The position numbers and the translations under genes are program-made. A stretch of 64,000 nt of DNA, from positions 41,974,001-42,038,000 of the forward strand of contig JBITNC010000001.1 in assembly GCA_050084985.1 (NCBI GenBank), read 5' to 3'. This stretch comes from Nageia nagi. Its lineage: Eukaryota > Plantae > Pinophyta. The notes beneath the pieces are model-generated. The model worked only from the letters and a program-made list of their open reading frames with translations. It was not told the DNA's origin and did no database searches. Shown piece after piece: positions 4,836-54,562 of the stretch. The stretch's first letter is position 1. Each line of letters begins with the position of its first letter.

Positions 4836-4842
4836 TATAAAA
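4836..4842 (+). promoter_or_regulatory. TATA box of the BAHD gene
   Basis: CCTATAAAAG ~90 bp upstream of the ATG, followed by a CT-rich 5'UTR-like stretch. Confidence 0.7.
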
Positions 4843-4926
4843 GCCTGTTAGCCTTCACGCAAAATTTATCTCGTCTGCTTTGCTTGCTTTGCAGTTGTCA
4901 TTTCTATTTCTATTTCTAGTTTGAAA

Positions 4927-6417
4927 ATGCCGGCTGAAGTTGAGATTGGTAGAATGGTGAGGTTGGATAGGAAAACCACAGTTTTTCCCGCCCTGCCTTC
5001 GATTCCACAACGGTGTAAGCTTAGCTCTTCCGATTTGCAGATGTTGGGCTGCAATTATATTCAGAAGGCGTTGATTTATTCCATGGAGGAGAACATGAGT
5101 TACGATTTTCGGTCGCTGACGGAGATGCTGAAAAAGAGTTTGTCTGAATGCTTGATGCGTTTTTTTCCGCTCGCCGGAAGGCTTGCAATCTCGGCGGAGG
5201 GAGAAGTTTACATCGATTGTAATGATTGTGGAGTCGAGTTTATCGAAGCTTCGGCACCGGCAGTTGGGGTTGAAGAAATCATGGCGCAGAAAATCGGTCC
5301 TGTCGTTCGGGAGCTTTTTGCTTTAGATGGTGCCATCAATATCAACGGTCAATTTCTGCCGTTGGTAGTAATTCAGGTTCGTGTTTGATTCTTATGGATA
5401 TTCATAAAGTTGGTTTTAGAGTTAGCATTATTTCGGCCAAATAATCGCAAACGAGGTCTACTTATCATATGGCGGTTTTTTCCATGCGTTTTAACATGTA
5501 GACTGTAATGGATATTCGTCATGGTTTTTAAGCTTTGTTTCAATTTCCAGGTAACGAAGCTGAGAGATGGAATTGCATTGGGCTGTACAGTAAACCATGC
5601 AACGGTGGACGGAACTTCCCTGTGGCATTTCATAAACACATGGGCACAAATGTGTCATGAACCCGCCACCGCCATCATTGCTGCCCCGCCACTCCACACG
5701 CGCTGTTTTAGCGCAGGATTGCCAATCAAACTCAACCTCCATCACTTAAAATCACCGCTCAGATTTTCTCCTCCGCCCTTCTGCGAAAAAATCTTCCACT
5801 TCACCGCCGATACGATTGCCCGCCTGAAAGCCCGAGCAAACAGATCCCTCAAAGAAAAACCACCCATCTCCTCCTTCCAAGCTCTGTCTTCTCACATATG
5901 GCTGTGCATAACACGCGCCCGGAAACTTCCTACGGCGGAGTTCACCACCTTCAAACTAGCCGTAAACTGCCGTCCCAGACAAATTCCTCCCTTACCCTAT
6001 TCCTACTTTGGAAACGCCATCCAGTTCCCGAGTTCCACCGTTTCGGCCGGCGAGCTTCTAAGTACTGACGTTTCGTACGTTGCGGGGCTTCTGAACAGCA
6101 TCATAAGGGCGCACCAGGATGCCAGTATTAAAGCTGAACTGGAGAAAATACCAACAATTATGCAGCTGGACAAAGGTGCTCCTGCAAATACTGTGATGAT
6201 GGGAAGCTCTCCGAGATTTCCACTGTATGATAATGATTTCGGGTGGGGAAGGCCTATAGGGGTGAGGAGTGGATGGTCTAACAAGTTTGATGGTAAGATG
6301 TCTGCATATCCAGGCTCTGACGGCTCAGGGAGTGTGGATATAGAGATTTGTTTGCTTCCAGAGACGATGAGTGCGTTGGAGGATGATCCACTTTTTCTTT
6401 GTCCATGCTATGATTGA
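4927..6417 (+). CDS. BAHD-family acyl-CoA-dependent acyltransferase (HXXXD-type), 2 exons 4927-5376 and 5551-6417, 438 aa; resembles the At5g01210/At2g39980/At3g50280-like group
   Basis: ATG at 4927. A GT..AG intron (5377-5550, phase 0) joins VVIQ|VTKL in frame. Catalytic HATVD (HXXXD) and DFGWG motifs are present, as are N-terminal FFPLAGRL and C-terminal GSSPRFPLYDNDFGWGRP..VRSG..NKFDGK. Stop TGA at 6415-6417; no disablements. Confidence 0.95.
5377..5550 (+). other. Spliceosomal intron (174 bp) at the conserved BAHD 'Q-intron' position
   Basis: CAG|GTTCGT donor and pyrimidine-rich TTTCCAG|GTA acceptor. It follows the conserved Gln shortly before HXXXD. Confidence 0.9.
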
Positions 6418-6956
6418 GCAGAAAACTCATGCTCTGCCATCAACCATGGATCACACTTGGAAATCCATTGTTTGCTTATAAAATTCTGGGAGGGAAAGCT
6501 TTTGTACCATATTCAATTTTAGAGAGATGTTGCAGCATTGTCTTTTTAGAAACATTTTGTGTAATTAACATGGCATGCCTGAGACCGAATGCAACCTCCA
6601 TGGTAGAACTTGTAGCATATTGAATATGGTGATTCAGAATTTGACGAAGGGTTGTTTTGGTAGATGAATTTTCTTAACGGAGAAGATAAAATAGGAAAAA
6701 AAAAAAAGTTACAATCTTATTTGTACAAATTAAAATAGATAAATAATAATCTTTTAAGAAATTGTCAAATCATATATCAAATAATCAATTAATAATTTGA
6801 GATCTAGTTTACAAGTAAACAATATTTATATAATAATAGTGATATAAATTTGAATTGGATGCTACTAACTTAAAAAAGATGCGTTGAATCTTTCCTTAAA
6901 TAGTTCTCCTAAAACTTTTGGTTTTATGAAGAATCTGAGGATGAAACTCAATGATA

Positions 6957-10079: not shown

Positions 10080-11510
10080 AAGTTGTGGATTAGTAGTTAA
10101 GAGCTAGATTCATTAAATGTACCACATAATTCATAGTAGAAGGATCCATTCAATCCTCTTAACAATATCTTCTCACCTATTAGTAATTTATCATGTACAA
10201 CTAAATAAAGTAGAAAACATGCTTTAAGCCATGCCTTACAATCTTATACTCTTTCCTATATAAAGGAAGGAAATTTTGGATTGTATCTAATGTTGAGATC
10301 TTTGTACATAGATTTGACCATGTATTCTTTCTTGTATTTGTGATACCATATAATTCTAAGTCCTTATTAGTAAACTTGAATGGGTATCATTTAATTTTCT
10401 TTTGATGTGCATAAATGAAGTTAAATTATTACAAGTCCATTATCCATTTGGCTAGTCTACCTTGTAACTATAGTTTGGATAATAAATACCTCAATGGGTC
10501 CACTTGAGCTACTATGTGAGTGGTATTTGTAATCATGTAATGCATCAAATTTTATGTGGTATAAAATGTGGAATAACAAAACTTCTCAACTGGAGTGTGT
10601 TTTATTTCTACCTTTTGTAAATTTTTGGACAAATAATACAAAACTCTTTCTTTATCTTCCTTATCAAGTTATACCAAAATAGTTCCTATTGCATGACTTG
10701 TAGTTTAAATATATAGATATAAAGGTTTACTATGATCAGTTGGTTACAAAATAGGAGGACTAAGTAGGTTCCTTTTGATATCTTCATGTGCTTTTGGACA
10801 CTCCTTAGTCTAGACATACTTGTTTCCTTTCTTGAGAAAATAGCATAACAATGTTATTTTATCTACCAATTATGCTATAAATATTTTAATTATTTGCATT
10901 TTCTCCTGCAAACTTATGATTTGCTTGATTTTCTTAGGTGAAGGCATATCTATTATGGATTTAACCTTTTGGGATTAATTTGTATACCTCTTCTAGAGAT
11001 AATGTACCCTATCAATTTGCCATTAGACACTCCAAAACAATACTTCTTATGATTTAACTTCAAATTATATTATCTCAATCTCTCAAAGATAATCCTTAAG
11101 TATGCTAAATGATCCTATTTATTTTTTAGATTTTGCAAGAATGTCATCAACATCTACTTCAATATATTTATGAATAATATCATGAAACATAGTTACCATT
11201 GCGTTTTGATATGTATCTCTAAAATGTTTGAGGTCAAAGGGAATGAATACTTAATAGAATCTACCCTAAGGTGTATTGAAGTTTTTTTTTTTATGTTGAC
11301 CCTTTTTATTCATCCTTATTTGATTGTAACTTGAAAAACTATCCATGAAAGATAACAACTCATGGTCTAGAATTAAGTCCATAATGGTATCAATATGTGG
11401 AAAGGAAAATTATTATTAGGATAAGCCTTGTTTAAATATCTCAAATTTGTACAAAAACTAATTTCCCCATTTGATTTTGTAGTAAGAACAATGTTTACCA
11501 ACCAAGGTGA
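10080..11510 (-). mobile_element. Degenerate Ty3/gypsy (non-chromovirus, Tat/Athila-like) pol fragment: RT and RNase H
   Basis: Minus-strand translation gives SPWLVNIV..., FMDSFSSYNQI, IEVDVDDILAK, LLSPPIL, LYYLSK and QGRLAKW, with many stops. Confidence 0.8.
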
Positions 11511-11515
11511 ATAAT

Positions 11516-11892
11516 TAATATTAAAGTTGAACTAGAGAAAACACCAACAATTATGTAACTAGACAAAGTTACTCTTGTGAATACTATGATGATGGAAATA
11601 TCTATGAGATTTACAATGTATGATAATGATTTTTGGGTGCTAAAGGCCAATAGTGGTGAGGAGTATATGGTATAACAAGTTTGATAGTAAGATGTTGACA
11701 TATCTAGGATATGATTGCTTAGGGAGTGTGGATATAAATATTTGTTACTTCTAGAGATGATGAGTCCATTGGAGGATGATCTACTTTTTATTTATTCATG
11801 CTATAATTTATTGAGAAGGGGAATATTACAAACTCATGCTCTACCATCAAATATGAATCACACTTAAAAAATCCATTATTTTCCTTTCAAAA
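11516..11892 (+). pseudogene. Decayed 3' fragment of the BAHD gene (C-terminal ~95 codons plus 3'UTR)
   Basis: Aligns to ~6123-6483 (e.g. TATGATAATGATTT, TAACAAGTTTGAT, AGGGAGTGTGGATATA, TTGGAGGATGAT, AAACTCATGCTCT). Contains stops and frameshifts, and the DFGWG motif is broken. Confidence 0.9.
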
Positions 11893-13269: not shown

Positions 13270-16200
13270 AATTCACTACCTCATTAGCTAAGTGATCCAT
13301 TAAGTGATTAGCTTCTCAATAATCATGGAGTATTTTGATATGATCCACATCATTAATGATACACTAAGACTCCTCTATTATATTGCTAATGTCCCAAATT
13401 GATGGAGAGTTACCCTTTAACAAGTTGATTACATTCACAAAATCACTTATGATGACCCAATTAGTGCAATTACACCTACTTATCATGGAAAGACTAATGA
13501 ATGTCACCCTAATATCCATAAAATAACTCATTTGATACCCTAAAGGTTTAATAAATAACATATTAATCCTCCCCAAATGATCTCTTATCACTGTGTGGCT
13601 CCATCCATACTAGGGTTACCTTTCAAGAAGCCATCAAAATTAATGGCCAACAATCCTATGAAAGGTAATCTCTAATGGAATTCCTTACAAGGGTGTTTCT
13701 CCCTATAATTATTCTCTATTCTAACCCCCAATTAAATAGGGTTGGAGCATCCCTCATGAACCCCACACAACTTTGAACTTAATAATAGAAAGATTCTCTA
13801 GGATAAAGTGTGAGATTCTATGGGTAACCCGACTGGCATCTAAGCAATTTTCCTTAAAAAATTGATGATTATGTTCCTTCCATATTCCCTTCAAAAATGA
13901 GCTAAGATTAACTCCCATAATTTATGCAATCTTATGCTAATAAAAAGGGCTCTCTCATTGAATCAACATTTCCTTAACAGTATGAGGTAGAACCAAATAT
14001 GTCTTAAATTACTAAAAAATATATAGGAACACCTCTTGGATAAACTCATAGTGAATCAATAGATGATGATATATTGATTACTCCTCCCTTTTATACAAAA
14101 TACATATATTTTCCAACTTGAATCCCCTGTTTCTTAGGTTATCTATGGTGAGTATTTTGTTCAAGTTAGTTATCTAGAGAAAAAAGGCTTCTTTATGTAT
14201 GAAGTGTTTGATCAAGACTTTCTTCATCATGTTCCATGGTAAGTTATTGATGTTGTAAACTTGATAACCTAGCCTTAATGAGTACATACCATGCTTCTCT
14301 TTAACCCAAACAAAGGAATCCTCCTTACCATGAGGGAGAAACATAATCTTTCAAAATTTTATTAATCAAAACCAGAGTTCCTTCCTAAGCCACTATGGGA
14401 TTCAATGTTTTCTTAGTGGCTAATAAGCTCTTACAAGTGAAAAAATAGGATTTTAAGATTTTTAAATTGGCTAATATTTGGACACCCAGAAGGGGGGCAT
14501 TCACCTAAAATTATAGGTAGGTATTAATTTAATGTATCTAATCATCAAAAAATCAACATATCATATGTATATAGTATGTATCCACTTACACCTTTTATTT
14601 TAAAGGCTATATTTTTACCAAAATATTGAAATTGATTTTCCTTGATTTCAATAATTATTTTTTGGATCAATCCTTAGGAATAACCCTAGTGGTATTATCG
14701 AGCTCTAATTTCCTCCATGCTTCCTCTCTCATCTATAAAGGTAGCTAGCAACCCATTTCCCATACTTTCCTATTATACTTCTAATAATAGGGATCAAATT
14801 CCTTTATTCCATCAAGGGACCCTCCATGAGCTAGTGATCCATACAAAAATTAATTTGATTACCATCCCTAATGATCCAATATCTATTACTTAAGAGAGAT
14901 TCCTTAGTACTTTGTAAACCATTCTAGAGAGAAGAACCAACTCTAGGATTTTCCTCATCAAGAGAGGAGGAATTCGAGATGTATTTTGAGTTAATGATCT
15001 TCACCCAAGGTTTATCTTCATTTAATACAATTTTCCATCCTAACTTACCTAGGAGAGCTAAGTTCATTTTTCTTAAGGTTCTTGATTCCAATACCCCCCT
15101 AAGCAAAGGGAATATAAACCTACTTTATAACCACTAAAACCATTATTTTCTTCTCCTCCATGCCTATCCATAAGAAATGTCTTTGAATTTTGATTATTTT
15201 CTACTGAACCATCACTCGAATTTTAAAAATAGACATAAAATACATTGGTAAACTCTAGATGACTGAATTGATCAATTGTAGCTTCCCTCCTAGAATGTTA
15301 GGATCCCATATCCTAAAATTTACTTATATTATAATAGTTTATTAATTAGAATATCAACTTATATTAAATGTAAGGGGACCAACATATTTGTAAAGCAAAT
15401 CACTGTTTTGTATTGAGCGATCGATTAGGGTTAGGGTAGGTAGACTATAACTATGTGTGAAAATATAATAGTTATCATCTTGGAAAATATATTATTTGAT
15501 TTGTAAAGAGATAGTACCATTGAAGTGGCTTGTGATTCATTTTGGTTATTCAATAAAGTGATTTTGTTATTAGCTTTCTCAATTTAGATTTGTGTTTCTT
15601 ATGTTGAGATATTGAGAAACATTTTGCTATTGTTTTACTATCATTTTGGTGAGAATCCCATTTAATAACTTATAGGATCCTAACATATGGTATTAGAGCT
15701 TCAATTTTGGCACCTATGGGTTGGTTAAGGATTAAGATTTCTATGTCTCTAACTGAAATAATGCCAAAATTTTGCCAAAACATCAAGGTCTCATAGAGTT
15801 GGAATCTTAGATTTTGCCCATTTTATAGCCAAAACTCTGCCATATTTTTTTTAGAATTTGGGCCAAATTGTTTCCACCATACTCATAAGCTTCATTCATA
15901 CCATGCCATTCCTACATCATGCCCTTCTAACTATCCTCCTATTCACTATTTTGCAACCTCCATACTAGAAGCCACCGCCATTTCTAAAATAATATTTTTT
16001 TCTCCTTATAGAACCCTATCTTTCCTTACCATAAATAGTAACTACTAAAAAGGGTAAAAACTTTTGAGGCCATTATCTTACAAATGGTGAGGAATTAGGG
16101 GATTCTAAAAAAGTCGATCCATTACCTATGGTAACGACTTTTTAGAAAAATAAGTATTAATTTTTTAAAATCATCATTTTGGTACCTATCCCATTGTAAT

Positions 16201-19200: not shown

Positions 19201-20945
19201 CTTTCACAAAAATTTGTGGATCCATTAGCACTTCAAGCCCTTTCATTTCTAGTTACTAACTAGATCAACTAGGTTAAACAAGAATAGCTCTAGGATAGTT
19301 TCATACATTCAGTGATTCAATAGCTATAGAAAGTTTCAATGAGTAAATCCCTATTTTCTTGGTATGAGGGAATTTTACAATTCAAAGGTAGTATTGCATT
19401 ACCAATGAACTCTTCATGTTGCAAGTTGATATTTTAAGAGTTGCATGCTACACCAATAGCTATCCATTTTGGATTTTTGAAAGCCTATCAATGGGTGCTT
19501 CGCTCTTTCTATTGGTCAAGTAGGAAATGGGACATAAAAGGTTTGTACCCAAATACGATGTTTATCAGTGATAGAAAGGGGAGACAGTGGGAACCCTAGG
19601 ATTGCTTTTGCCTTTATGAATATCAAAGTGAACTTGGAAAGATATTTCAATGGATTTTATTGAAAGTATTCCAAAATCATATGACAAAGTTATTATCATG
19701 GTAGTAGTGGATTGACTCTCCAAGTATGCGCACTTCTATCCATTAGTACATCCATAAAAGGCCATCAATGTTGCCCAACTCTTTCTTGATAACATTTTCA
19801 AACTCCATGACATGCCTTATACCATTTTTAGTGACCATGATTTGACATTCATGAGCAAATTCTAGAAAAAATGTTTTAAACTCTAGGGCACTACACTCAA
19901 TATGAGCTCTACTTATCACCCCTAAATAAATGGTTAGGCAAAGATTGTTAATAAATGCTTGGAAACATATCTCTATTATTTTGCTTCAACCTAACCAATT
20001 CATTAGGTAAAATAGCCTCCTTTAGCTGAATGGTGGTATAGTAATTCATATAATACTTCTATCAAGATGACTCCCTATGAAGCTCTATATGGCCAACCCC
20101 CACCCATAATCATCTCTTACATTCTGGGTGGCACCAATATCCAAGAAGTAGGCACCACCTTAACGAATCATGGATACATCATTCACATCCTTTGGGAAAA
20201 TCTTCAAGTGGTTTAACATTGAATGAAATAATAAGATGATCAATAATGGGTGGCATGTTAGGATCCCATATCATAACATAGCTTTTAGGAAAAAGCTCTC
20301 TTTAAGAGGGGTGGCATGTTAGGATCCCATATCATAACATTTTCTTAGATTATAATAGTTTATTAATTAGAATATAAGCTTATATTAAATGAAAGGATAC
20401 CAAAATATTTGTAAGGTGAATCACCATTTTGTATTGAGCGATCGATTAGGGTTAGGGTAGGCAGACTACAAATATGTGTGAAAATGGAATAGTTATTATC
20501 TTGTAAAATATATTGTTTGAGTTGTAAGGAGGTATCCCCTTGAAGTGGCCTATGATTCATTTTGGTTATTCAGTGAAGTGATTATGTTATTATCTTGCTC
20601 AATTTAGATTCATGTTTCCTGTGTTGAGATATTGAGATATGTTTTGCTATTGTTTCACTATCATTTTGGTGATAATCCCATTTAAAAACTTGTAGGTTTC
20701 TAACATAGACTTAACAAAGCTCCTTTCCACCCTTGCATCTTCCATTAAAAGCATTCAATGAATAGATCGCATAAGGCCTCTTTCATGTAACCTATAAAGA
20801 TTGGCATTCCTAAGTTGATAGTAGGAATCTCCTCAATATAACATTCAAAGATTCTAGCCACTCTTTGTTGTATCATCAACCTAGTAGTATAAAAGAATAA
20901 CTTACTCTTCTAAAAATTTATCTTTTGACCTGCAGTAACTTATAA
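13270..20945 (-). mobile_element. Degenerate L1-type LINE ORF2 (RT C-terminus, zf-RVT, RNase H-like), split by a Ty3/gypsy insertion at 15296-20705
   Basis: AGQKINF*KS at ~20930; WKGALLSL|GGKLQLINSV reads continuously across the insertion; MNLALLGKLGWK at ~15060; KILTIDNLRNRG at ~14140; INFDG..KGNP...IRDHLG at ~13600. Confidence 0.88.
15296..20705 (+). mobile_element. Ty3/gypsy chromovirus (Reina-like) LTR retrotransposon, degenerate; LTRs 15296-15685 and 20317-20705
   Basis: LTRs run TGTTAGGATCC...GGATCCTAACA. Met-type PBS TGGTATTAGAGC at 15688; PPT AAGAGGGGTGGCA; TSD TAGAA/TAGAC. Contains gag (FPKFDGDDP), protease (..STHNF), RT (FFNDILIY), RH and INT with many stops. Confidence 0.93.
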
Positions 20946-20949
20946 AATA

Positions 20950-22689
20950 AGGAGAGAGGTATGGTATTGTAATATCAAAGAGAGTGGTAATGCTCAAAGG
21001 GCATATAAAGAGTTGTAATGTTGTAATGGTATACCTAATCCATTGTATTCCTCTTGCTAAGAAGAAGAGGGGAATGATTTATATTCATGATGGAGTGATT
21101 ATATTTATGGGTGAGGAGAAACCTATATTAGAATCTTGCAAAGAGATGAAGAGAGAGTATTGTAGCTATTTCTATTAAGCAATTCTTCCTTATTATATTT
21201 TGTAATTTATGGATTACAAGAATTACATTATTAATGCTTCTCTAGGAATGTAGCTTAACAACATGTTGAGTGAACCTCAAAAAATTGTTGTCTTCTCTTT
21301 ACCTGCATGTTTTATTTCTTCTATTCAAATTTTCTTTCACATAATCATATTTATAAATACTAATAATTGGTATTAAAGCTTAATGTTGGGATTTTAGCAA
21401 GTTTAAAGGATTGCAAGAGAAACTAGCTACTTCTCTTATTCTATCCCTTCCCCATCTTGTATACACAACTTGAAATTGGAAAGGGGTTTTCCATTGTATT
21501 GATTATGACTATGGAAGAGCATAGATTAATGAAGTAGTGGGAGCAATGATGATGTAGATCAAGTTAGATCTTGTATAAGGAAGTTTCAAGGAGATGATAT
21601 GGATACCAAAGGTGCACAATGGATCTTCAACATCAAGATATAGGAAATTCCACCAAGGATATTCAAAGATAGAGGTGAATTTTGAAGTTCCCTGTAGTTT
21701 CATATGATTTGCATACCAATGGTGTTGATTGTTTATGCAAGGAAATATTAGAAGGAATGGGATTTGGGAACCCACAAGGTTGGATGGTGCATGGTGTTTT
21801 ATATTCCAGATGAAAAGAGAAGGACAAGGATGCAAGGAAAGACTTAAAGAAGACTTCATGAGGATATGGTTGATCTAGGATGAACAAGAATAGTTCATGG
21901 AGCATCATAAGAAGAAGATAAAGTTGTGTTCCTATCTAAAGCAGTGAATCAATCTCTAAGTGGGATATTGTTGGGTGTGTAAAGCCTTATTCACAACTGA
22001 ATGAAGATGTGATCTCATGGCATAGTAATGAGATGCCTCCAATAATATTGCATAGATCCTATGATGAATAGGTTCATGTTATAGTTGCATGGCGATGGCC
22101 TCTAGTTGGTGCATGTCATTGAGTGAAATATTGGTTGTTACACCTAGAAGAAAGTGACAAATACATGAGGAATCTGCTTGTCATGGTGAGAGTATAATGT
22201 TATATCTAGAAATAATTTTTTTTGAATTTGTTATAACAATAATAATGGATTTATTATTATTATTATTATTATATTATTAAAGGCACAAACCATTTAGACA
22301 ATATTATCGTAAAGTATAATATATATATTGACATGTGCTATGTTGTATCAATGTGTAATTCTTGTATTGGCATAATAGAAGGATTCCCATGAGGCATTCT
22401 CATTGATGTATTCCTCCTACTGAGAAGAAGAGAGGAATGGTATTATAATTTCAAAGAGAATGGTAATATCATAAGGGTATATAGAGAGTTGTAATGTTGG
22501 AATGGTATACTAGATCCATTGTATTCCTCTAGCTGAGAAGAATGGGTCATAATCATAATGGAGTGATTATGTTTATGTGGGAGGAGAAACCCATGTGTGA
22601 GAAGCTTGCAAGGAGATGAAGAGAGGGTGTTGCAACTATTTTTGCTAAGTAGTTCTACTTTCACATAATCATATTTCTAAATCCCAACA
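20950..22689 (+). mobile_element. LTR retrotransposon remnant: partial LTR (20950-21365), Met-type PBS, then a full LTR (21384-22689) with almost no internal region
   Basis: Direct repeat 20950-21365 vs 22430-22689. PBS-like TGGTATTAAAGC at 21368. The second LTR runs TGTTGGGATT...AATCCCAACA. Confidence 0.75.
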
Positions 22690-24985
22690 CATGTCTATTG
22701 GGTTCTCTTGTGTTAAAGTCACCTGGGAGTCACAATCAACCACATCCACACTAATTCAAAATCATTAATTGAATTTAGCATATTCACATCATGTGAAGGG
22801 GAGAGATTGAAGTAAAGCCTTCTTTTTTTATTAAGTGTGTAATTTTTATAATAAAGATCTAAATTTAAATTCTCTTAAAGTGAATTTAAATTTGATCTTT
22901 ATTATAAAAATTACTCACTTTATTTAAAAAAGGAGACCAATTCAAAATATTATCTATATATATGTATAACTAATTTCTACCAATAATACGAATTGATAGA
23001 AACTACTTTACTTAAAATAATTAATATACAAATAAAATCCTTACTTTCACTTATTTTTAATAACGATGTTATAATCCTTCAAATAAAGTACACATTTTTT
23101 ATTAAATTACTTATTTAAATTATTGGAAATTATTATCTCTCTTATATAAAAATAAGATTAATAATCTTGTTTGTTTTCAAGAATATATGAATGTGTTGAT
23201 TAAAAACTAGCCATTATTTTACTAGAAATTGAGGACATCTTATTGCTAACACTTATGTTGAATTTATCATTATCCACTTATAGTTGTGTAGATATGTGTA
23301 TGAAAAATATTACATTTATAATATATATGATATTTAAACAATATATACTTATAATTAATAAAGCCTTATAAACATATAAGTAAACCTACATCATATATCC
23401 TTTCAAGAATTTAATTTTATTTAAAATTATTTTATTATCTACATATTTATAAATCCAATTAATATTATCCTCAAGTTTTTCTTTTAATTTGAAAGAAAAT
23501 AGTAAAAGTAAAATTTAGTACATAATGTAATACAAACTAAATATATTTATAAATAATAAAAACTTATAAAGTAAACCTACACCATATATCTCTAGGAATT
23601 TAATTTTTTTTCAAATTATTTTACTATTTATATATTTATAAATCAAATTACAATCATCTTCAATTTTTTCTTTTAATTTGAAAGAAAGATACTAATATCC
23701 ACATCGTAGTAAAATTTAGTACATGAAAGTGAATGAAAAAGGTTTTATGAATATAAATACATTTTTCATAAAAAAATTGTAATAAAAACTAAATATATTT
23801 ATAATTAATAAAAACTTATAAAGATATAAGTAAAACTACAATATATATTTTCATGAATTTAATTTTATTTGAAATTATTTTATTTTCTAATATTTATAAA
23901 TCAAATTACCATCTTCCTGAAGTTTTTCTTTTAATTTGAAAGAAAAATACTAATATCTACATCTTAGTAAAATTTAGTACATGCAAATGAATATAATGAA
24001 AACTAAATATGTAATTGAAAAAAATCAGTTTTTATTTTTTATTTTGTTTTATAAAACCAAGTGTCTTGAAACCTCAATACTTGCATTGTGCCATTGTAAC
24101 TTTGTGGATTCTGTATAATACTAAAGTTTACTTGAAAGTTTAAACTTACCCATTCTCTTCAACTCCCCTCTCTATCAACTCAAAAAACTTAATTATTTTT
24201 CTTTTTTATTTATATTTTTTAATTCATAAACATTATTATTAAAATATCCATAAAACAATAAAACATTTATCACATTCAAGTTTTCATATTTTAAATATAT
24301 ATGATTAAAAAATCTTCATCAGTTACAACCAATCAAAAAAGAGAAATACAGGATAACAATTATATTTGATGGATTTTAATCATATATAATTATTAAATGA
24401 TTTAAAAAACTCATAATAAAATCATAACAAGTTGCACTCTTTGTTGGCAATTGACACATTCCTGATTCCACACAAAGATTATACTAATCATTACAAAAAC
24501 ATTTCTTGAAATAAACTTTACATAACTTAAAATATCAATCTACAAAGTCCAAGACGACGGAGAAGATTATTCTAAATAATCCCTATCGACACCTGTGCCT
24601 TCCTAATACGACACATTATTTGTAATAGGCAATAGGCTTCACACTTTCCACTAGCATTCCAATACATTGTATTTCACAATTTCCACAAGCGTTCCAATAC
24701 GTTGTATGTGAAATTTTAAATTATCTTGTAATGATAGACCTTTCGATAAATGACAGAACACTATAATACAAAGTAGATGGCGAGAGAATGGCTCCACATG
24801 CAAAGTACAAAGACTGAATAGATCCAAAGGCCTACTTCATGATAGCGATACAAACGAATGACCACATTTTAAATGCATTCAGTGTCTACCCCAATAATTC
24901 TCATGGCCTCCTGCATGTGGGGAAAGCACTCTCCAAGCTGTGCTTACTCTCTCCATTGACTGCGCCCACAAAGGCAATAGTATTT
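22690..24985 (+). repeat. Copy 2 of the direct duplication of the BAHD upstream region; also the left arm of the large inverted repeat
   Basis: Colinear with 373-4099. 24602-24953 differs from 3701-4052 at ~8 positions. Confidence 0.92.
23360..24015 (+). repeat. Degenerate AT-rich tandem subrepeat (~190-260 bp unit, ~3 copies); ~4 copies at 930-3105 and ~2 inverted copies at 26140-26400
   Basis: Recurring ATATTTATAAATC.AATTA..ATC.TC..AGTTTTTCTTTTAATTTGAAAGAAA core. Confidence 0.8.
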
Positions 24986-26055
24986 GTGTGCGCAATCAAT
25001 GGCGAGCAATACCATGGAGAGTGAGCACAGCTGGGAAACTAATTTTCCTGACGTGCAGAAGGCCATGAGAATTATTGGGGAAGAATGCACGTAAAATGTG
25101 GGCGAGTGCAGCTTCATTCGTCATTCCTTTGAATCGCTATAGGATGTAGAGCATCGGGTCTATTCCGTTTTTGTACTTTGCATGTAGACCGACTCTCTCG
25201 CCATCCACTGTATATGAATGTTATAGAATACCATTACTGTCATTATTGAAAGGTCTACATCTAGAAGAGATCTAAACTTTTCACATACAATGTATTGGAA
25301 TGCTAGTGGAAATTGTGAAGCCTATTGCCTACTACAAATACTATTTTGTATTAGGAAAGCACTGTTCTATGGAGAGGATTTACAAAAATCTTCTCCGTCG
25401 ATTGACTTTTGTAGATTGATATTAGAATTTAGGTGAAGTTTGTTTCAATATATGTTTTTCCAATTATTAGTAAAATCTGTGTAGAATGTGGTAGATGCCA
25501 AGAAAGTATGAAACTTATTATTTTATTATAATTTTTATTTTAAAATATTGTTTTTTATTTATATGATTAGATAATTTATCAAATGTAATTGTTATCATGT
25601 ATTTTATCTTCCTAAAATTTTACGGGAACCAAAAAATTACTTGATGAAGGTTTTATAATATATATATTTAAAATAGCTAAGTGGATGTAGATGTTCAATT
25701 TAATGTAGAGATAAGTTTGAATTTTGGGGTTCATGGAATGAAGGGTGTGTTGTACTAGTATTATTGAACATCATCAATGTGGAAGTTTTCAAACATCACC
25801 AATGTGGAAGTTGAACTTGGAACGGTAATTGAGGGTACTCTCCTAATTCTCTTAACAATAGGTGATATTAAAAATTACTTGAATATGATCAAAAAAAAAA
25901 ATTTATAAGTAATTTTAACAATAATGTCTATGAATATTAAAAAAATGTTAAAAAAATTCAATTGTATATTAGATTTTTTTTCATCCATTTAAATGTCCTA
26001 AGTTTTAATTTTAATGATAAATAAAAAAATATCCATATTATGTTAATAGTATTTT

Positions 26056-26136
26056 TGTTGTGGAACACACACAGCCCCACTAGTCAACTTACCACTAGTC
26101 TAAAGCCCCACCATTGCACCACCCCCATTGGAGTTA
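26056..26136 (-). mobile_element. Short or internally deleted SINE-like element, same family as 999-1125
   Basis: 13-bp TSD TTAATAGTATTTT (26043-26055 and 26137-26149). Shares GCCCCA.CA.T..ACCACCCCCA.TGG and ACACACAC motifs with the 999-1125 element. Confidence 0.65.
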
Positions 26137-27164
26137 TTAATAGTATTTTCTCTCCAAATTGTAAGGGTAAAAACAAGAAAGATGATGGTTATTTGAGTTA
26201 TTAATATGTAACAAAAAAAAATATTTTAATGGAATAAAATTATGGATTTATTAATATGTTTTTGTCGTTGTTATTGTTGTTGTTTTTATTTCTATTAGTA
26301 TTAGTACTACTATAACTACTACTAAGATGATGGTAATTTAATTTATAAATATGTAAATAACAAAAGAATTTATAATGGAATAAAATTATGGGTTTATTCA
26401 TATTTTATTAAATTCTTATTATCTATAATGTAAATATATATAGTTTAAATATTATATATGTCATGAATATCATTCATGTTAAGAATATGTAAAAATTAAT
26501 ATATACAATGTAAATATCATGTCTTATGAATATGATATTTTTATATAATTATCCTAAAAAATATGAAAGGATAATGATAAATTCATACAAAACTTTAAAA
26601 ATAAGATACCTTAAATTTCTAGTATAAGAATAATTATTTTCACTAACAAATACATCATACTCTTTGAAAAAATAAGAGTAATATTCTCGTATTAAAAAAT
26701 TAATGCAATTATTTTAAATAATTTAAGTAATCAACTTAATAAAAATCCACATACTTTTAAAAAGAATTAAAACATCATTACTATAAATAAATGAAATAAA
26801 ATAAAATGTTATTAATGTCCATGGTGGACCAAAAGTGACATAAGGAACTAAGCAAAGAGTATATTGAAAACTACAAGTAGGGGGACAAAAGTGTTATGCC
26901 ACAAAGAATAAATATAAGGAATGTAAAACATGTTGCACTAAAATGAGTGACATCCATAATGGGGAATTTCTTTCAAAAACATGAACCAATCTCTCCTAAC
27001 TAGATGAATCACTGTTGAATAAGTTGTTGATTTGTCTCTACCTATCACTTATCTAGAGTCCCAAAGATCTATGGGTATGTTGTTTACTGATTTTGTTAAT
27101 GTTTAGATGATATTTTGCCTATCATTTTCAACCAATATTTATATCCCTCCTCAGTCTATCATAT

Positions 27165-27490
27165 TTTGTGAAGTATATTTTGATAAGTCTATACTGTGAG
27201 GGGTGGGAGATAATTGCATGAGAGCTCATCTATCGACAAAACTAGATTGCTTCTCTGATGTAAAATCCAAAGTAATATTGGTCCTTATAACTGAAGAATG
27301 TGTATATAGAGTGTGATTCATCCTTTAAGAGGTAGTGGAATCTACCTTGAATCTCATAGTAAATTGGACAATGAAAAATAAAGTGATGCAAAGTTTTCTA
27401 CTTCCCTTAGCAAGAAAAATATACATATTCATTTTCCTTCGTTATATGGTTCTCTATCTCAATATGAAGCTAATGGGAGCACATTCAATA
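27165..27490 (+). mobile_element. Possible LINE-type RNase H-like relic within a ~1 kb insertion (26815-27820)
   Basis: Weak motifs VYFDKS, NVYIECDS and YEAN resemble RVT_3-type RNase H. Confidence 0.35.
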
Positions 27491-29199: not shown

Positions 29200-32100
29200 T
29201 GTTAGTCATGAGATTTATAATATAAACTCAAACAAGTTTCAACATTCAAAGGATGAAGGAATAGAATGGAACTATCATTCATAAAATCAAGACCAAAAAA
29301 TGGAGATGAATATATGAACTATACTAACTAAAATAAGAAGATTACAAATGGTGGCAATACAACCCAAACTATGATACAGTAATGGAGAAAGCAAAAAAAT
29401 CTAAGTTACAACCTAAAAATTGCTCCATACAATACCATACAATGATTAACTAAAAGAATAACTATCCTAAGTCTACCTTAATCCTAATATTCATGAAGAA
29501 TTAGTTATAATAAGAATTCTCATGTTACATAGAAATTGTAATTACAAAAGAATCTATAACTAATGCCTAAAGTATCATTCTTATAAGAACTAAAGTGCTA
29601 GTGCTAATAGAAGCATTGACATTAAATGTTTAATGGACCAGTATCATTGATAATGGTAGGGATGTTAGCAATAGTGTAAGTACTGAAGCTTACACAATAG
29701 ATCTAATAAGATCAAGTCAATCTCTAACATACTTCCACTTGATGCTAAGTGGACTCACAAGTGAGTTTCTTAGCTTCAAAACTTGAGATGTAGTGACTCC
29801 TTTTGTAAATATATATGCTATTTGGTCATGGGTGCTATAATGTCTCATCTCAATCTATATTAAATCTCTACCATGTCATGAATGAAGTGATATTTCAAAT
29901 AAAAGTGCTTTGACATACTATGATGGAATAGATTTTGTGTCAAGTGAATGACACTCAAGTTTTCATAAAATAGTAAAGTAGATCAATGTTTCTTCTCACC
30001 AATTTCCTCCAACACTTTACAGAGACACAATCCTTGAGCACCTTCTAAAGTAAGTGTTATATATTTTGATTTAGTTGAGAAGAGTGCCATTAATACTTTC
30101 TTCTTAGACCTCCTTATGATCATCTCAGATCCTAAAGAAAAATAATTTTATAAGTAGACTTCTAGTCATCCAAGTTACTACCCAAATCAAAATCAATAAA
30201 ACCAAATAGCTCAATAATCTCATATTGAAATAAATGGATCCTATAATAAAGAGTACCCTTCACATACCTTAGAATTATCTTTACAACCTCCATATGTAAC
30301 AGAGATGGGTCATTCATATACCTTGAAATCATTGAGATAACATAAGCAATATCCAACCTAGTATTGATGAAATACATAAGGCTTCTAATAATTCTCCTAA
30401 ATCTTTTAGATTTTCTTTCTCAGTCACATAATCCTTACACAACAATAAATCATAAGCAATAGGTGTAGGGAATGATTTACAACTTTCCTTGTATACTTCT
30501 TTTGTATATCAGTTGCATATTTTATTTGATAAATGAAGATTATGTCATTATTTTGATGAAATTCAATGCCAAGGAAATAGTACATCAACCCCAAATCTTT
30601 CATTTCAAATTCTTGCATCATATTAGCCTTGAATTTATCATTAAAAACATAACTACTACCAATATAAATCAAATTATCCACATACAAACACGTAAGTAGG
30701 ATGTCATTAACTTCTTTTTTTGGATATAAACTTCATCATCTATGTACCCATTCAAAAAAGCACTTTTAACATCCATATGATGTAAAATCCAACATTTATG
30801 AGAAGCCAAGAAGAGAACCATTCTAACAATCTCTTACCTTGATACAAGATCAAGTGTCTCTTCATAATCAATCCCATGTTTTTGAGTGAATTATTTAGCA
30901 ACCAATCTTGCCTTGAATATTTCAATAGTCCCATCACTATTACATTTGGCATTGTAGACCCACTTGGATCCAACACACTTATTTCCTTTGGAAAACTCAC
31001 ATAACTCCCAACTATTATTCCTAACAATGGAATTGATTTAATATTTCATAGATTATATCCACACATCATTAATATAAGCATGTTCATAGCAAGAAGGATC
31101 AAAACTAATAGTAGAAAGAAAATCATAATTTACCATGTCACCTTTGGCTTCACCATCATCTTCATCTCCATACATATGCATGTTCTCAAGTCTTTGAATA
31201 ACTTGATCCATCTATTGAGCATGCCCTCTAGTTATCCTTATTTGGAAATTGGTATCTAGAACTTGAGAAGGTGGGCAGATTTGAAGTGCCTTAGTCCCAT
31301 TTTTTGTTCTTCTTACTTCAAAGAAAATATTACATTAATTTTCATTATAATAAGGACTAGATATACTTTTATTTAGATTTTTTAACACACTTGTTCAAGG
31401 AGGACTTGGTGTAAATATAGAAGTGTTGGTGCTATTACCAGTGTTGGTGCTACTACTAGTGTTGGTGCTAGATCTAGAAGGATCAAACTACCCATAACTC
31501 TACATTCTCGACTACACACTCTGATGCATATTCTTCCCAATGAAAGAACTTGAATAACTCTCCAAACTAGTTCCATCATCAAAATAACCTTTTTAGTACT
31601 ATAGATTCCCCCTTCATCAAAAATGACATCTCTTGACATAATAATCTTCCTAGTTATGGAGTTGTAAATCCTATAGGATTTTATCTTCTCATAAGAACTA
31701 ATAAAAATATAAACCTCACTTTTTGCATCAAGCTTATTTCTTTATTTACCAACTATATGATAAAATGCATTGAACCCTAAGACTTTGAAAGTGGTTCACA
31801 TTTGGCTTCTTGTGATGCCAAGCCTCATAACGATTGAAGTTTTTCAAGCTTATTCTAGGACTTCTATTCAAAATATAAATTATTTTCGTAATAGCATCAA
31901 CCCAATACATATTTTTCAACTATTTAGTTTGCACCATGCTCCTATCCATCTCCATAATAGTCCTATTTTTTCTTTCTACAACTCATTTTTGTTGTGGGGT
32001 GTAGGCAATAGTGAGTTTTCTCTTAATCCCATGATCCCTACAAAATTAGAGGAATTCATTGGATCAAAACTCTTCACCATGGTAAATCCTTAAACATTTA

Positions 32101-35676: not shown

Positions 35677-38600
35677 TGTAGACACCTAAAAATGAATTAT
35701 ATTTATTAAATAATTCATTTTAGAGCCTCAATGATGTATTATGTAAAAAGGGGTTAAATAATACCCTAAGTCATGATAAAGCTATGTAATATATCTAGTG
35801 GATCCTTGTGACATATACAAGGGGTCAAAAAGATCAAAGTTATATAAACTTGTATCCTATATAAAGGCATCAATTGATGACCTTAAGTTTCATAGGAAAA
35901 TGAATATGAGGATCCTAGAGAGATTCTAGCAATGATATGATTCTTTCATTTGCTCATCGCTACATTCTTTATTGCATCTATTATATTGCTTATTTTAATC
36001 CATCAATAGTGTACCTAATATAGAATGCCAACGATGTAAATTGAATGAATGTATCCTTATCTTTCGTGTATATTTCTCTTAATGGAATGAATATGTGATC
36101 TAACTAAGAATAAGTGTATTTCTTCTATTCGTTATTACCATATTTTAGATATAAGTGATAATAAGAAACAAGTAGATCAATAGTGCATTAATGAACCTCT
36201 ATAAACAATTATATGCATTATTTTGGGTCTACATTTTGGTGAACCCGACTATTCGATTTATCTTGCCCTACTAGTAAGATCTCATAAAATTTTGTTACAG
36301 GTTTACACTACTAGCATCATGATTCCTATTCCTAGGTCGATAGAAGTGTAGAAATGGAACCAACAGTTTCTTTCCTTGATGCAATACATGAACAAAAATA
36401 TGCTCAAGATGCAGAAAGCATTGAGTGCATTGATCGATATAGGAAGCTCAACATCTAGTCCTACTATTCAAGTTAGGACTTCTAACATCATACAACCATA
36501 AAATTTGGATGAATATGATGGCATTTTCACTTACACCCTTGAAGATGACATCCACAACTTTCCCCTACCACTCGACCACAAGGATCCCAAGTTCAAGATG
36601 TTTAGTTGCAAACAAGATTGCAAACATCTTATTAGCTTTTAGGAGGATTACTTGTTGAAGTTAGGATCAAATGAGATATTGATGGTGAAATTCTTCCTAA
36701 GGAGTTTGATAGGGGATTTTATGCAATGTTTCTATGCTCTACCAGGTAATTTGATTAATTCATTTAAAACCTTAGTCAAAGCATTCATAGGCCAATACAA
36801 GCACAATATCAAGAAGTAAAATAATGTATCCAAATTATGTGCAATTTGAAAAGGAAGGAATGAAATCCTAGAGAAGTATATTCCATGATTCAAAAAGGTA
36901 TGGTAATATATTCAAATAAAATTAAATGAATATGAAATTTATGCTATTTTTCATGAATCTATTATACCTATTCTTAATTTGCATGCTCCTAGTGCTAGAG
37001 ATATTAGTTTTGGAATATTAGTTCAACAATTATTAAAAAAAGAGAAGGCATTATTACATTTAGGTGAGCTTAAGTATGCACCTAATTCCTTTGTTAAATA
37101 AAATCAAAAAATATATGATAAGAAAGATGAAAAATCGATACATATGACAGATAGACCTACCTCTCCTCCAAAAATGCAAAGGTCTCAAACTACAAATGAG
37201 AACTCATATACATTTCTAGTACAACGACTCATTATTTTAAGGGATATAATTAAAAGAACACTTTTACATCCCCTTAAGCTCTCTTCTCAAGATCATAATA
37301 ATCCTATGGGATGCTTTGATGCCTATTGCATTTACCATCAATGAAAAGGACATGCTACAAATTTTTGCAAGATATTAGAGATAGAAATATTGGAGCTTGT
37401 TTAGAAAGGAAGGTATATAATTGATGAAAACCTTGCCAACCAAGGACCTACAATAAATATTTATTCAATGAACAAGGAGTTTTATTGTAACTTAAGAAGA
37501 GGATGCCCATGACATGTTCCAAATCTTCTTTGTACAAATTTGAAAAGCTCAATCAAGAATTGTTAGATGAATGTTCAGATTTATATATCACACCTATGGT
37601 TGATGGATGGGAAGTTAAATGAACAATGGTAGATAATGGATCAGCTATAAATGTATGCTCTAATCATTTTTTGATTCAATTGCAAGAGAAAGGTCTAGAT
37701 ATTCCTCCCTTAGAAGAAGATACTTTTAAGATTAGGGCTTATGATAGCTCATCAAAGAAACCATTAGGAATAGCTACAATCATGATTACTATAGGTTTTA
37801 GGACTATAGAAGCAAAATTTTATATTGTAGAGTCCAAACTTTCATATAACATGATTTTTGGGGGACCTTGGATTCATGATATGGATGCAATCCTTTCAAC
37901 GCTACATGGTAGATTGAAGTTTGAATTCCAAGGTGAAGTACATACAGTCATGGAAGATCCTAACCCATATGCATTATGTAATGTTGTTGCTCTTGAAGAT
38001 TTTGCCATGTTACCATCATGATATGAAATAGAACCCTTGGAATGTCCTACACTAGATACAAATAAAGAAACACAAGTTCAAATCATAGAGACAGGTATGG
38101 GAACCTACAAAATTGACAACACATACCTCTTTATGCCTAACAATTACTTGGGATGGCCTAGGATGTTAGCTGTTGAAGGCTACCAATGGAGTTCTATTCT
38201 ACCACTAGGCTATAAATGGCATGAAAATTATGACCAATATTGCTTTCCCTTGTTTGAAAAGTCAAACCAGACCTCTTCAACAGACATACCTTCATCTTCT
38301 GAATTGGGTAAGATTTTTCCCTCTTCTTTTTTTCATAAGTACATGGTTCAAAACTACAAATATAAAGGGGGGTTTATAAAAATTTGAATAAGGAATGCCT
38401 ACTTTCCTTGATACCTCTAAGACTCAAATGATCAAAATAGGTTTGGGTAATGATGGGCAAGTAAAACAGAAATGGGGTCCCATTAAGTTTATTAAAGAAT
38501 GCGATTTAATAGAATTATCATATGATATTGATGTAGATACATGGATTGATGATTCTATACCTCTTTAATTTGATTATTTTAGTATTGATGATGATATTCT

Positions 38601-41600
38601 TGAATACCTAGGGGCACACTTGAAAATGTCCAAATCTAATGAGAAACGTAAACCAACTTATATACTTAATGAATATGCTATTTTCGTCAAGAGATCAATT
38701 TTCATGAAGTATTGCAGGTTCAACCATTAGATGCAATTGAGGATGAAGAACCAAGCATGAAAGAATTGCCATCCTTGTTATAAAAATATCTTACATTTCC
38801 ATAAGAATAGTTGATACACATCAAAATTGGCACTTCCAATGATGAGAGATTGATACAAATTGGAGCATCCCTACCTCTTCCATAACAAAAAAAGGTACAA
38901 AAACAAGTTTATTGAGCATTCTAAGAATTGTTCTTGGTATTATGATGATATGACAAGATTAGATCCCTCATTTTTTATGCATAATGCACCATTGAAATAG
39001 GGTTTCAAGCCAATCAAATAAAAACTTAGAAAGATGCAGCCTTCCAAGGCCTTACTAGTCAAGAAAGAGATAAAGAAATGTTTGAATGCTGATTTCATAA
39101 GGCCTATTGACTATTCTAATTGGATGGCTAATATTGTCCTTATTTCCAAACCAATTAGTGAAATATGGGTATGTACATATTTTCATGATATCAATAATGC
39201 TTGTCCCAAAGATGATTTTTCATTACCAAATATTGATATGATTATCAATAGTATAGCTAGTCATGATACATTATCATTCATGAATGGATTTTTGAGCTAT
39301 AACCAAATTTTGATTAACCTTGTTGATCAACATAAAATAGTTTTTACTACCCCTTGGGGTAATTTTTGTTGGATATTTATGCCTTTTGGACTTAAAAATA
39401 TAGGAGCTACATATCAAAGAGCAATGGTTACCATGTTTCATGAGCACATTCACAAAATCATGGAGGTATATGTTGATGATATCCTCGTCAAATTCAAGAA
39501 AGGATAAGATCATTTATAAGCACTTGAAGAGGTATTCACCATTTTTTAAAAGTACAAATTAAGACTTAAACTTCAAAAATGTACATTTGGAGTTACTTCT
39601 AGTAAATTATTAGGATTCATGGTTTCTAATAAAGGAATAGAAGTAGATCCTAAAAAAGTAAAATCCATTGTTAGTATGCCTCCATCCAAAATTTTAAAAC
39701 AATTAAGGAGTTTCCAAGGTGAAATAAATTTAGTTAGAAGATTCATTTCAAAACCTAGAGATAAATGTAGGTCATTCACTCATTTGCTCAAAAAGGACAT
39801 CAAATTTGTATGGGATGAAAATTGTCAAAAAGCATTTGAGGATATCAAATAATATTTGCTTAATCCTCCCATCCTAGTCCCCATGGATTTGTCAAAACTT
39901 TTTTACTTATACATATCAGCCACATTATATACACTAAGAACAATGCTTTGTCAAAAATATATAGAAAATAAGGAAAGAGCCATCTATTATTTAAACCAAA
40001 CATTGATTGATTATAAAACTAGATATACCCCTATGGAAAAAATTTGCTATGGTATAATTTCACTATTGAAAAATTAAGGTATTATTTATTATATTGTACT
40101 ACATTTGTTATTAGTCCTGTTAACCCATTGAAATATCTTATGGCTAAATAGAATCTATCAAGTAGACTTGCAAAATGGCTAATGTTGTTACAAGAATTCG
40201 ACATTAATGTTGCAGAAAAAAATTTGTCAAATACCAAGCAATCACAGATTTGATAGCTAATTTCCCACAAGATAGGGAGGCAGTCACTTATGAAGAATTT
40301 AAAAGGAATATCAAGGTGACCCACATTGTTAGCAACCTACATACCTGCTAGAGGGATGCCAATGATGTGAATTTGATGAGATCTCAATCCCTGATTAATA
40401 CATATGTCTCACAGAAGATGATCCCACTATTTGGACCATGTATTTTGATGGTTCAAAATGTTCTCATAGAGTGAAAGCAGGTATTATTTTGGTATCTCCT
40501 ACAAATCAAATAGTCCCTATGGCCTACAAACTTGCTTTTGATTGTACAAATAATATGCCTAAGTATGAGGCACTAATATTAGGATTGGAAGCTATTGTAA
40601 TTTTGAAAATTAAAAATATAGAGATATATGGGGATTCTCAACTTGTTGTAAATCAAGTACAAGATTTCTTTGATACTAAGGATGAAAAGTTAAAACCTTA
40701 TAGACTTGCAATTATTAATTTATTGGATCATTTTGATAGATATACTATTTAGAATATTCCAAGAACTAATAACAGGTAAGCATATGCAATGGTAAGTGTA
40801 GCTTCACTAGTACCAATTGAAATTAAAGATGAAGAGACCATCATTACAATTTGTAAGTTAAGCTCTCATTATTATATGGATCATATGGATGAGATTCCAG
40901 ATTATCTTATCATAAAAGAGAATGATTTTCAAAATTGGTACTTTGATATCTATAATTATTTAAAAAATTAAATAGTTCCTAACAATTTTGATAGAAATGA
41001 AAGAGTGAGATTGAAAAGAACTGCAATAAGATATGTGATCATTGGAGAATTCTTATACAAGAGATCATTTGATGGTGCATTGTTGAGATGCTTAACACAA
41101 GATGAGATAACTACTACCTTAGAACAAGCTCATCATGGTTTATATGGTGGTCACATCCATGCAAAAGCACTACACACTAAAATTTTGAGGATTGGATATT
41201 ATTGGCCTACTATGAAAGAAGATTGTAAAGCCCATGTAAAAACTTGTTTGCAATGCCAAAAACATGCAAATTTAGAGAATTACATTCTATTGTTTCTCCA
41301 TGACAATTTGCTACTTGGGGCATAGATTTGATTGGTATGATTAATCCTCACTCTTAGGAAGGACATAAATTTTTCATTATAGCTACAAAATTCATCACCA
41401 AATGGATCAAAGCTATCCTAATGAAATCAATCACTCAAGATAAAATCATTGCATTCCTTATTGAAACATCATCACAAGGTTTGGTGTACAACAAATATTA
41501 ATCAGGGAAAATGGAACAAATTGCAAAGGTAAAGACATGAAAGGATTTTGTAAAACATTTCATATTATGCAAACCTTTTCTTCCATCTATTACCCTCAAG

Positions 41601-54490: not shown

Positions 54491-54562
54491 TCCCAAAACC
54501 TAATCATACCCAAGAAATCCCAATCCCCATCAACCATCAATGATATCATCATCTATAAGAAT

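Follow-up and report, generated by a model that had tools for sequence, protein, structure and literature searches.

The question raised by the inverted repeat at 23030-26816 of a 64,000-nucleotide stretch of the Nageia nagi genome (contig JBITNC010000001.1 of assembly GCA_050084985.1, positions 41,974,001 to 42,038,000; here called the window) is how a palindrome with a total size of 3.8 kb arose in a very AT-rich gymnosperm genome, and whether it acts as a hairpin. A preliminary description of the sequence saw in it a candidate gene for a hairpin RNA or microRNA. With moderate confidence the locus is read here as an inverted duplication of the fold-back (snap-back) type, a kind of structure that is already known, which arose long ago from a module designated L. 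This module is the distal part of the DNA upstream of a BAHD/DCR-like acyltransferase gene, within one repeat unit of a tandem array of such genes. Copy A of L lies upstream of an intact gene of this family, copy B is the left arm of the palindrome and copy C, in inverted orientation, is the right arm. The genomic scope is this one 64-kb window of one genome.

The preliminary description had arms of ~1.9 kb meeting at CACAAA-GGCAATAGTA-TTTGTG (24967-24988), and both the sequence and the arm alignment confirm it: CACAAA occupies 24967-24972, the loop GGCAATAGTA 24973-24982 and TTTGTG 24983-24988. The parts of the palindrome and its borders are as follows.

23030-24972, no strand assigned: left arm (copy B), with inverted homology to 24983-26816 and direct homology to copy A
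24973-24982, no strand assigned: 10-nt loop or spacer GGCAATAGTA; copy A has the same 10 nt at 4087-4096
24983-26816, no strand assigned: right arm (copy C), in inverted orientation; of the three copies it diverged first
24287-24951, no strand assigned: left inner core, well paired, CpG observed/expected ratio (o/e) about 0.62
25017-25675, no strand assigned: right inner core, CpG o/e 0.77-0.81, with the 11-CpG segment 24985-25210
23526-23992, no strand assigned: 258-bp, 1.8-copy AT-rich tandem repeat, in the left arm only and within its poorly alignable mid-section
24638-24707, no strand assigned: 35-nt tandem duplication, in B and A (3737-3806) and not in C, which bulges the stem
22690-23029, plus strand: flank common to A and B and not C, outside the inverted repeat
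26817-27400, no strand assigned: unrelated DNA next to the outer end of C, where homology stops; partly high-copy repeat

When the left side is locally aligned with the reverse-complemented right side, an inner block proves collinear (24287-24951 against 25675-25017); in it B and C are 78.4% identical over the 575 gap-free columns of a three-way MAFFT alignment. Collinear pieces of the outer arms reach ~23030 and ~26816, with a B-C identity of 62.6% over 396 columns, and a mid-section of 700-800 nt in each arm is barely alignable. The outer AT-rich arms are thus much more eroded than the inner ones, as had been described, and the eroded outer ends of the inverted repeat can be placed only to within about 10 nt. 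The well-paired inner part, previously put at ~450 bp with pairing blocks of 16-27 nt, does contain such blocks and extends over ~660 bp. Shortly beyond the outer end of the right arm a high-copy repeat begins (26947-27400; summed contig depth 18-57 in two DNA runs).

The evidence on the origin of the palindrome comes from copy A, which was found by self-comparison of the window and which matches the whole left arm together with 340 bp of its outer flank.

373-4099, plus strand: copy A, direct paralogue of 22690-24985; it ends at the equivalent of the palindrome tip and is followed by the proximal upstream DNA of the BAHD gene
4927-6414, plus strand: intact BAHD (DCR-like) acyltransferase gene, Pfam PF02458, with an intron containing in-frame stops at ~5389-5520
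11517-11807, plus strand: 3' relic of a second BAHD copy, 82% (81.8%) identical in DNA to 6126-6473

From the end of copy A to the BAHD start codon is 828 bp. The two exons of the gene each match PF02458 (E = 6.7e-26 and 2.7e-58), the open reading frame (ORF) holds the HxxxD and DFGWG motifs, and the single intron sits at the usual position for BAHD genes. The best matches of the protein are from conifers, with 67-70% identity to the Cryptomeria "BAHD acyltransferase DCR" and to proteins of Wollemia and Taxus. A tblastn search of the window found no BAHD relic adjoining the palindrome, the only relic being that at 11517-11807, and the left flank of copy A, when sought elsewhere, gave no match.

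Copies A and B agree through ...GCGCCCAC[A/G]AAGGCAATAGTATTT, up to 4099 in A and 24985 in B. Beyond this shared stretch A runs on as TTATACAC... (also given as TTATACACTATATT...) towards the gene, and B runs into GTGTGCGCAATCAATGG, which, one later mismatch excepted, is the reverse complement of L just upstream of AAA. Compared at the junction, with a paralogue (copy A) and not the ancestral allele as reference, A reads ...AAGGCAATAGTATTT followed by TTATAC and B reads ...AAAGGCAATAGTATTT followed by GTGTGCGC, with a microhomology of 3 nt (AAA/TTT). The spacer is short and single-copy, a loop of 10 nt with arm homology beginning at most 6 nt to either side, and there is a second junction at ~26816/26817, where the homology of C stops. 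Since the homology of A ends at the tip and A then continues to its gene, and since the short loop is accompanied by microhomology, the junction carries the signature of a fold-back.

We infer a break-and-copy mechanism for this event. A double-strand break would have fallen where L meets the proximal upstream DNA. After resection, the 3' end ...AAAGGCAATAGTATTT (ending ...TATTT) would have folded back so that its TTT paired with AAA, leaving the 10-nt loop. Synthesis would then have copied L backwards for ~1.8 kb along its own strand before switching to unrelated DNA at 26816/26817, with loss of the gene of the folded-back unit. The arms would subsequently have drifted apart, to 22% divergence in the core and ~37% in the outer parts, apparently free of arm-to-arm homogenisation. 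At a later time B and copy A would have reached their 95% identity, whether through gene conversion (the two being direct repeats) or through a subsequent duplication; a conversion tract would end naturally at the end of A-B homology. The 0.65-kb core is viewed as a slowly evolving, CpG-retaining module of an unmethylated gene-upstream zone, a state that both arms would have inherited and seemingly kept. The 3' ends of the two BAHD copies are 81.8% identical, and this compared with 78% for B and C would make the fold-back about as old as the split of the BAHD copies.

The proposed structure may be compared with rearrangements of known origin. Foldback inversions in yeast form through single-stranded hairpins, with loops below 15 nt in one class and stems down to 4 bp, and always require a second rearrangement for stabilisation (PMC7467729); human inverted duplications have a single-copy spacer and 2-8 bp of inverted microhomology (PMC3907307). 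The Nageia locus shares with these the direct and inverted copies joined through a short single-copy spacer (here 10 nt), the inverted microhomology at the spacer edge (here AAA/TTT), the second junction to unrelated DNA at the far end, and an unrearranged paralogue or reference, here copy A, that preserves the original continuation. It differs in that the event is ancient and fixed and not de novo, in that the inverted segment is only ~1.8 kb, and in that the arms are not closest relatives, so that a later A-B exchange or duplication is needed; moreover, the mechanism has been demonstrated in organisms other than gymnosperms.

The relationship of the three copies was determined from pairwise identities and from site patterns, i.e. 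sites where two copies agree against the third.

Core, 575 columns: identity A-B 95.1%, A-C 77.6%, B-C 78.4%; site patterns AB against C 110, AC against B 9, BC against A 14
Outer parts, 396 columns: identity A-B 85.4%, A-C 66.9%, B-C 62.6%; site patterns AB against C 103, AC against B 30, BC against A 13

The copies are related as ((A,B),C), with C the outgroup throughout (77.6-78.4% identical to A and B in the core, 63-67% in the outer part), and the palindrome arms are therefore not each other's closest relatives. The indels agree with this tree, as A and B share the 35-nt tandem duplication that C is without; private indels are a loss of 15 nt near the tip in B alone and a loss of 60 nt in A alone. 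By substitutions, A and B are 95% identical in the core and 81-89% in the outer parts; either gene conversion or a difference in substitution rates could account for this unevenness.

Such a tree also suits the opposite order of events, with the palindrome older than copy A. After a cut at the tip of the hairpin or cruciform, the broken end, carrying arm B and its 340-bp flank (22690-24985), would have been copied or inserted before the BAHD gene and so have given rise to A. Tips of hairpins are nuclease targets. The MRX-Sae2 complex, for example, cleaves hairpin structures (PMC7467729). With this order ((A,B),C) requires no gene conversion, and it is consistent with an A-B homology that runs 340 bp past the outer limit of the inverted repeat and stops 3 nt beyond the loop. 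However, the break must then have coincided exactly with the junction of the arms, how the palindrome itself arose is left unexplained, and the uneven A-B identity fits poorly, though unequal rates could account for it. The palindrome-first order is thus judged unlikely. An initial fold-back is preferred because no coincidence is needed at the junction, and because the order in A of L, proximal upstream DNA and gene is that of a natural tandem-array unit. Near the left limit of A-B homology, and ending 34 bp before it, is a pair of direct repeats 1.5 kb apart (20949-21186 and 22425-22656; 83% identical, with no CpG left), which may be a small LTR-type (long terminal repeat) insertion that marks this limit.

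Sequencing data bearing on the reality and copy number of the locus consist of four contig-only data sets of low coverage. Contigs of one study match the left arm at 24510-24886 (0-2 differences) and the outer right arm at 25969-26128, and those of another study match the right core at 25227-25493 with 3 differences. An assembly artefact, e.g. a chimeric fold-back read, is hardly credible: artefactual palindromes have identical arms, here there is 22-37% divergence with many indels, and contigs from the two studies match pieces of both arms with 0-3 differences. The divergence of 22% between the arms by itself speaks against a chimeric read, and what may be said for an artefact is that none of the low-coverage contigs is shown to cross the tip. 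A 151-nt contig from a third organism that joined 24421 to 25521 was set aside, since its matches are AT-rich stretches of 34-41 nt with 4-6 mismatches.

The same contigs bear on whether the palindrome is a foldback transposon, or two mobile-element copies placed head to head with copy A as a third insertion. Long AT-rich arms, one of them with a tandem sub-repeat, and the common inner end point of all three copies would suit an element of this kind. However, contig depth on the arms is 2-6, like that of the unique flank, as compared to 18-57 on the neighbouring repeat (two runs, two studies), and no additional copy of the arms or of L beyond A, B and C is present in the 64-kb window. The ends of L do not form an inverted repeat with each other, no Helitron, LTR or terminal inverted repeat (TIR) ends were seen by eye, the arm ORFs have no Pfam match, and the A-B homology crosses the outer (left) end of the inverted repeat. 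A transposon origin is therefore very improbable. Foldback transposons include the Drosophila FB elements and the foldback elements of plants. Their long AT-rich inverted arms with sub-repeats and almost no loop resemble the Nageia palindrome, which differs in having, in this 64-kb window and by contig depth, no sign of multiple dispersed copies, terminal motifs or target-site duplications, and in that the homology of one arm to copy A passes the end of the inverted repeat. A 1096-nt contig (run X2) matches only the 68-nt block 24885-24952, with variants like those of right arm C, and the best-conserved block (CCCCAATAATTCTCATGGCCT and neighbours) thus probably has a fourth, diverged copy elsewhere in the genome.

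The feature of the palindrome that stands out most from its surroundings is its content of CpG. The preliminary count of about 11 CpGs in 24985-25210 proved exact (o/e 0.88), and among the 226-bp windows of the 64 kb only this segment and the BAHD gene reach 9 or more. The CpG o/e of the whole window is 0.19, with a median of 0.11 and a 95th percentile of 0.55 for 600-bp windows; the BAHD gene, at 0.89, has by far the highest value, and the retrotransposon relics, described earlier as nearly CpG-free, have indeed only 0.07-0.17. The extreme value belongs to one arm only, the mirror segment of the left arm (24745-24970) having 4 CpGs (o/e 0.38), and the counts are small. This asymmetry between the arms (11 against 4) was rejected as a signal, the counts being too small and the base changes in the core between C and A/B being balanced (38 against 36). 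The o/e of the core as a whole is raised in all three copies (0.58 in A, 0.62 in B and 0.77 in C), and the CpG-rich zone of copy A extends unbroken into the gene (3300-4650, o/e 0.55-0.65).

Moreover, 10 of 18 CpGs are conserved between B and C, as compared to 62.5% of all dinucleotides, and the core CpGs have thus not been hypermutable. In other repeat pairs of the window with comparable divergence the CpG o/e is 0.15-0.27, and 4 of 12 and 0 of 6 CpGs have survived; a control for such decay is a direct repeat of 1.5 kb (47498-49057 and 50597-52164; 80.7% identical, o/e 0.18-0.19). An internal example is the dead BAHD 3' relic, with 0 CpGs against 5 in the live copy. That the core has long been hypomethylated, as was first proposed for the stem, is therefore credible as judged by base composition. 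However, copy A and the BAHD proximal upstream zone have retained their CpGs as well, and the retention is therefore better attributed to a gene-upstream module than to a hairpin gene. The only other raised CpG o/e in the window outside BAHD-related DNA (0.48-0.55) is at 35700-36600.

A strong hairpin is nonetheless predicted from the arms. The longest perfect Watson-Crick runs between them are 22, 21, 18, 16, 16 and 16 nt, and allowing G:U pairs gives unbroken helices of up to 28 bp, three per strand being of at least 21 bp; the stem is imperfect, with only 9 perfect 21-mers pairing between the arms. Folding of the 951-nt core 24500-25450, a check suggested in the preliminary description, gives -475.5 kcal/mol (z = -31) on the plus strand and -478.3 kcal/mol (z = -27) on the minus strand. 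For the 1401-nt hairpin the minimum free energy is -604 kcal/mol with 76-78% of bases paired, an extended imperfect double-stranded RNA (dsRNA). Six runs of at least 16 nt compare with 0.68 expected (P = 0.00015) under a uniform-column model that counts gap columns as mismatches; when gap columns are excluded, a rough estimate of the expectation is ~2.5, and the excess, or clustering of conservation, is only modest.

Selection for pairing, as might be expected for the constrained stem of the preliminary description, did not emerge from the comparison. A G:U bias on one strand is absent, as 26 (plus strand) and 31 (minus strand) of the 137 B-C mismatches are G:U-compatible, folding on the two strands is equal, and B is closer to A than to its partner C. 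Changes assigned to lineages, with A and C as comparators, number 9 in B against 14 in A for the core and 30 against 13 for the outer part; the hairpin arm is thus not slower than copy A. Pairing has also been broken by the 15-nt deletion near the tip of B and by the 35-nt duplication, both of which add bulges. Whichever two copies are compared, copy A outside the palindrome included, the AT-rich outer parts evolve 2-3 times faster than the core, and the slowness of the core is therefore a property of the module and not of the hairpin. We infer that the hairpin as such has no selected small-RNA function.

Several points nevertheless weigh against the fold-back reading. The B-C identity of 78.4% falls far below that of A-B (95.1%), whereas a simple fold-back predicts that B and C should be closest, and a second event, A-B conversion or duplication, must therefore be added. 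The mechanism is established in yeast and human and not in plants, and a palindrome-first history would alter the order of events, though not the nature of the locus. The perfect blocks are somewhat longer than the uniform model predicts. Finally, the keeping of CpGs through 22% divergence in a relic without a gene is unexpected for dead DNA in this genome and hints at some continuing activity.

A rival possibility is that the palindrome is a transcribed endogenous inverted-repeat locus (endoIR), i.e. a source of hairpin RNA (hpRNA) or a proto-MIRNA (microRNA) gene, in which an RNA polymerase II (Pol II) transcript over the tip would form an imperfect stem of ~0.7 kb, longer with the outer arms, to be cut by Dicer-like enzymes into small interfering RNAs (siRNAs) of 21-24 nt. 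Long inverted repeats that are transcribed are recognised as siRNA sources and suspected of giving rise to MIR genes (PMC10827316). The hairpin predicted here, with -604 kcal/mol over 1401 nt and three helices of at least 21 bp per strand, is very stable, and the core, to judge from its CpGs, behaves as unmethylated, gene-like DNA. This reading is doubtful all the same. Just 9 perfect 21-mers pair across arms only 78% identical, G:U asymmetry and a strand difference in folding energy are both absent, and B is not slowed relative to A. A search of Rfam 15 was negative, for the whole window at gathering score and for the core even with E values up to 1. None of the sequencing runs recorded as RNA matched the stretch, and a further data set, possibly of RNA and made from the sample of a DNA set, has no contig on the arms, a weak point as these data are very sparse. 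The retention of CpGs in the hairpin and in copy A argues against a hairpin that feeds RNA-directed DNA methylation, as methylation directed by 24-nt siRNAs should have cost both of them their CpGs.

The possible targets of such RNAs are also limited. Perfect 21-mers shared with copy A, the only matching sequence in the window, number 282 for arm B and 33 for the reverse complement of arm C, and no 18-mer of the core occurs on either strand of the BAHD transcript region 4100-6700. Any small RNA could consequently act only on the upstream DNA or an upstream transcript, and not on the mRNA. In a young MIRNA gene the arms would be homologous to a transcribed target, and here the homology is found at least 830 bp upstream of the ATG. 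Six ORFs of 42-87 aa (five in the arms, the other being the match of one of these in copy A) gave only chance-level Pfam hits below curated cut-offs. The best-conserved frame (..HIL.AF..PNNSHGLLHV.K) was rejected by eye as a coding exon, its 66 nt containing 8 differences, of which 3 are synonymous, and being followed by a frameshift of 1 nt.

Known hairpin loci provide partial parallels. The endoIR-siRNA class comprises long inverted repeats transcribed by Pol II and processed by DCL2/3/4, the type case being Arabidopsis IR71 with ~3 kb of dsRNA (PMC10827316). The Nageia palindrome resembles IR71 in its kilobase-scale inverted repeat, its short loop and the long hairpin predicted if it is transcribed (PMC10827316); it differs in that its CpG retention argues against self-directed methylation and in that its hairpin is a predicted one. 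With MIRNA genes that arose by inverted duplication (2004 work cited in PMC10827316) it shares a partly eroded inverted duplication with a paralogous copy next to a protein-coding gene. It differs from them in that the duplicated DNA is not in the transcribed gene but at least 830 bp upstream of the start codon, with no 18-mer match in 4100-6700.

The model for a hairpin paired with a promoter is found in systems in which a hairpin-forming locus is linked to a gene sharing non-coding or partial sequence with it. Inverted repeats that silence related copies include maize Mu killer and Arabidopsis PAI1-PAI4. The dominance modifiers of the Brassicaceae S-locus are proto-miRNA-like small-RNA precursors that act on a linked partner gene, and both the small RNAs and the silencing have been measured (PMC13128112). 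The Nageia locus shares the linkage and the partial homology with all of these, and differs from them in that small RNAs and silencing were measured there; copy A, which would be its target, has a CpG content that still suggests unmethylated DNA.

A bolder form of this proposal would have the palindrome be a living, unmethylated transcription unit, whose hairpin RNA would yield 21-22-nt small RNAs that trigger no methylation and whose site of action is the distal upstream DNA of the neighbouring DCR-like BAHD gene or a transcript of that DNA; alternatively, each arm would be an orphaned enhancer copy that the binding of transcription factors keeps open. Either would explain how a relic without a gene kept its CpGs through 22% divergence, and the proposal is given only an outside chance.

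Read as a fold-back, the locus is a clean natural inverted duplication with the unrearranged paralogue preserved 20 kb away, useful for the study of the birth and ageing of palindromes in very large plant genomes. Its standout feature is the retention of CpGs in three copies of a 0.65-kb module, two of them no longer beside a gene, while the intergenic DNA has lost nearly all of its own. If the hairpin were both unmethylated and transcribed, a gymnosperm would have an endogenous inverted repeat of an unusual kind, one descended from upstream DNA, and if the hairpin acted on the BAHD upstream region, the two would form a natural regulatory pair in which an upstream-derived hairpin acts on its gene of origin. 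If the hairpin is silent, the more likely view is that the core serves BAHD/DCR-like genes as a conserved regulatory module, the palindrome being structural debris.

The remainder of the window holds other repeats and retrotransposon remains. Between copy A and the palindrome, direct repeats 5 kb apart and 87.8% identical (15295-15687 and 20316-20707) are probably the LTRs of a retrotransposon of ~5.4 kb. Retrotransposon pol ORFs are present on the plus strand at 37626-39507, with the YVDD reverse-transcriptase motif at 39034-39507, and an inverted relic 63-65% identical to these (10631-11520) adjoins the BAHD 3' relic. Relic ORFs of a Copia-like reverse transcriptase (..MYVDNLIY..) are found on the minus strand at 30162-31027. 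The region 53000-57000 shows a strong, sustained negative GC skew (-0.40 to -0.55) together with a CpG o/e of 0.07.

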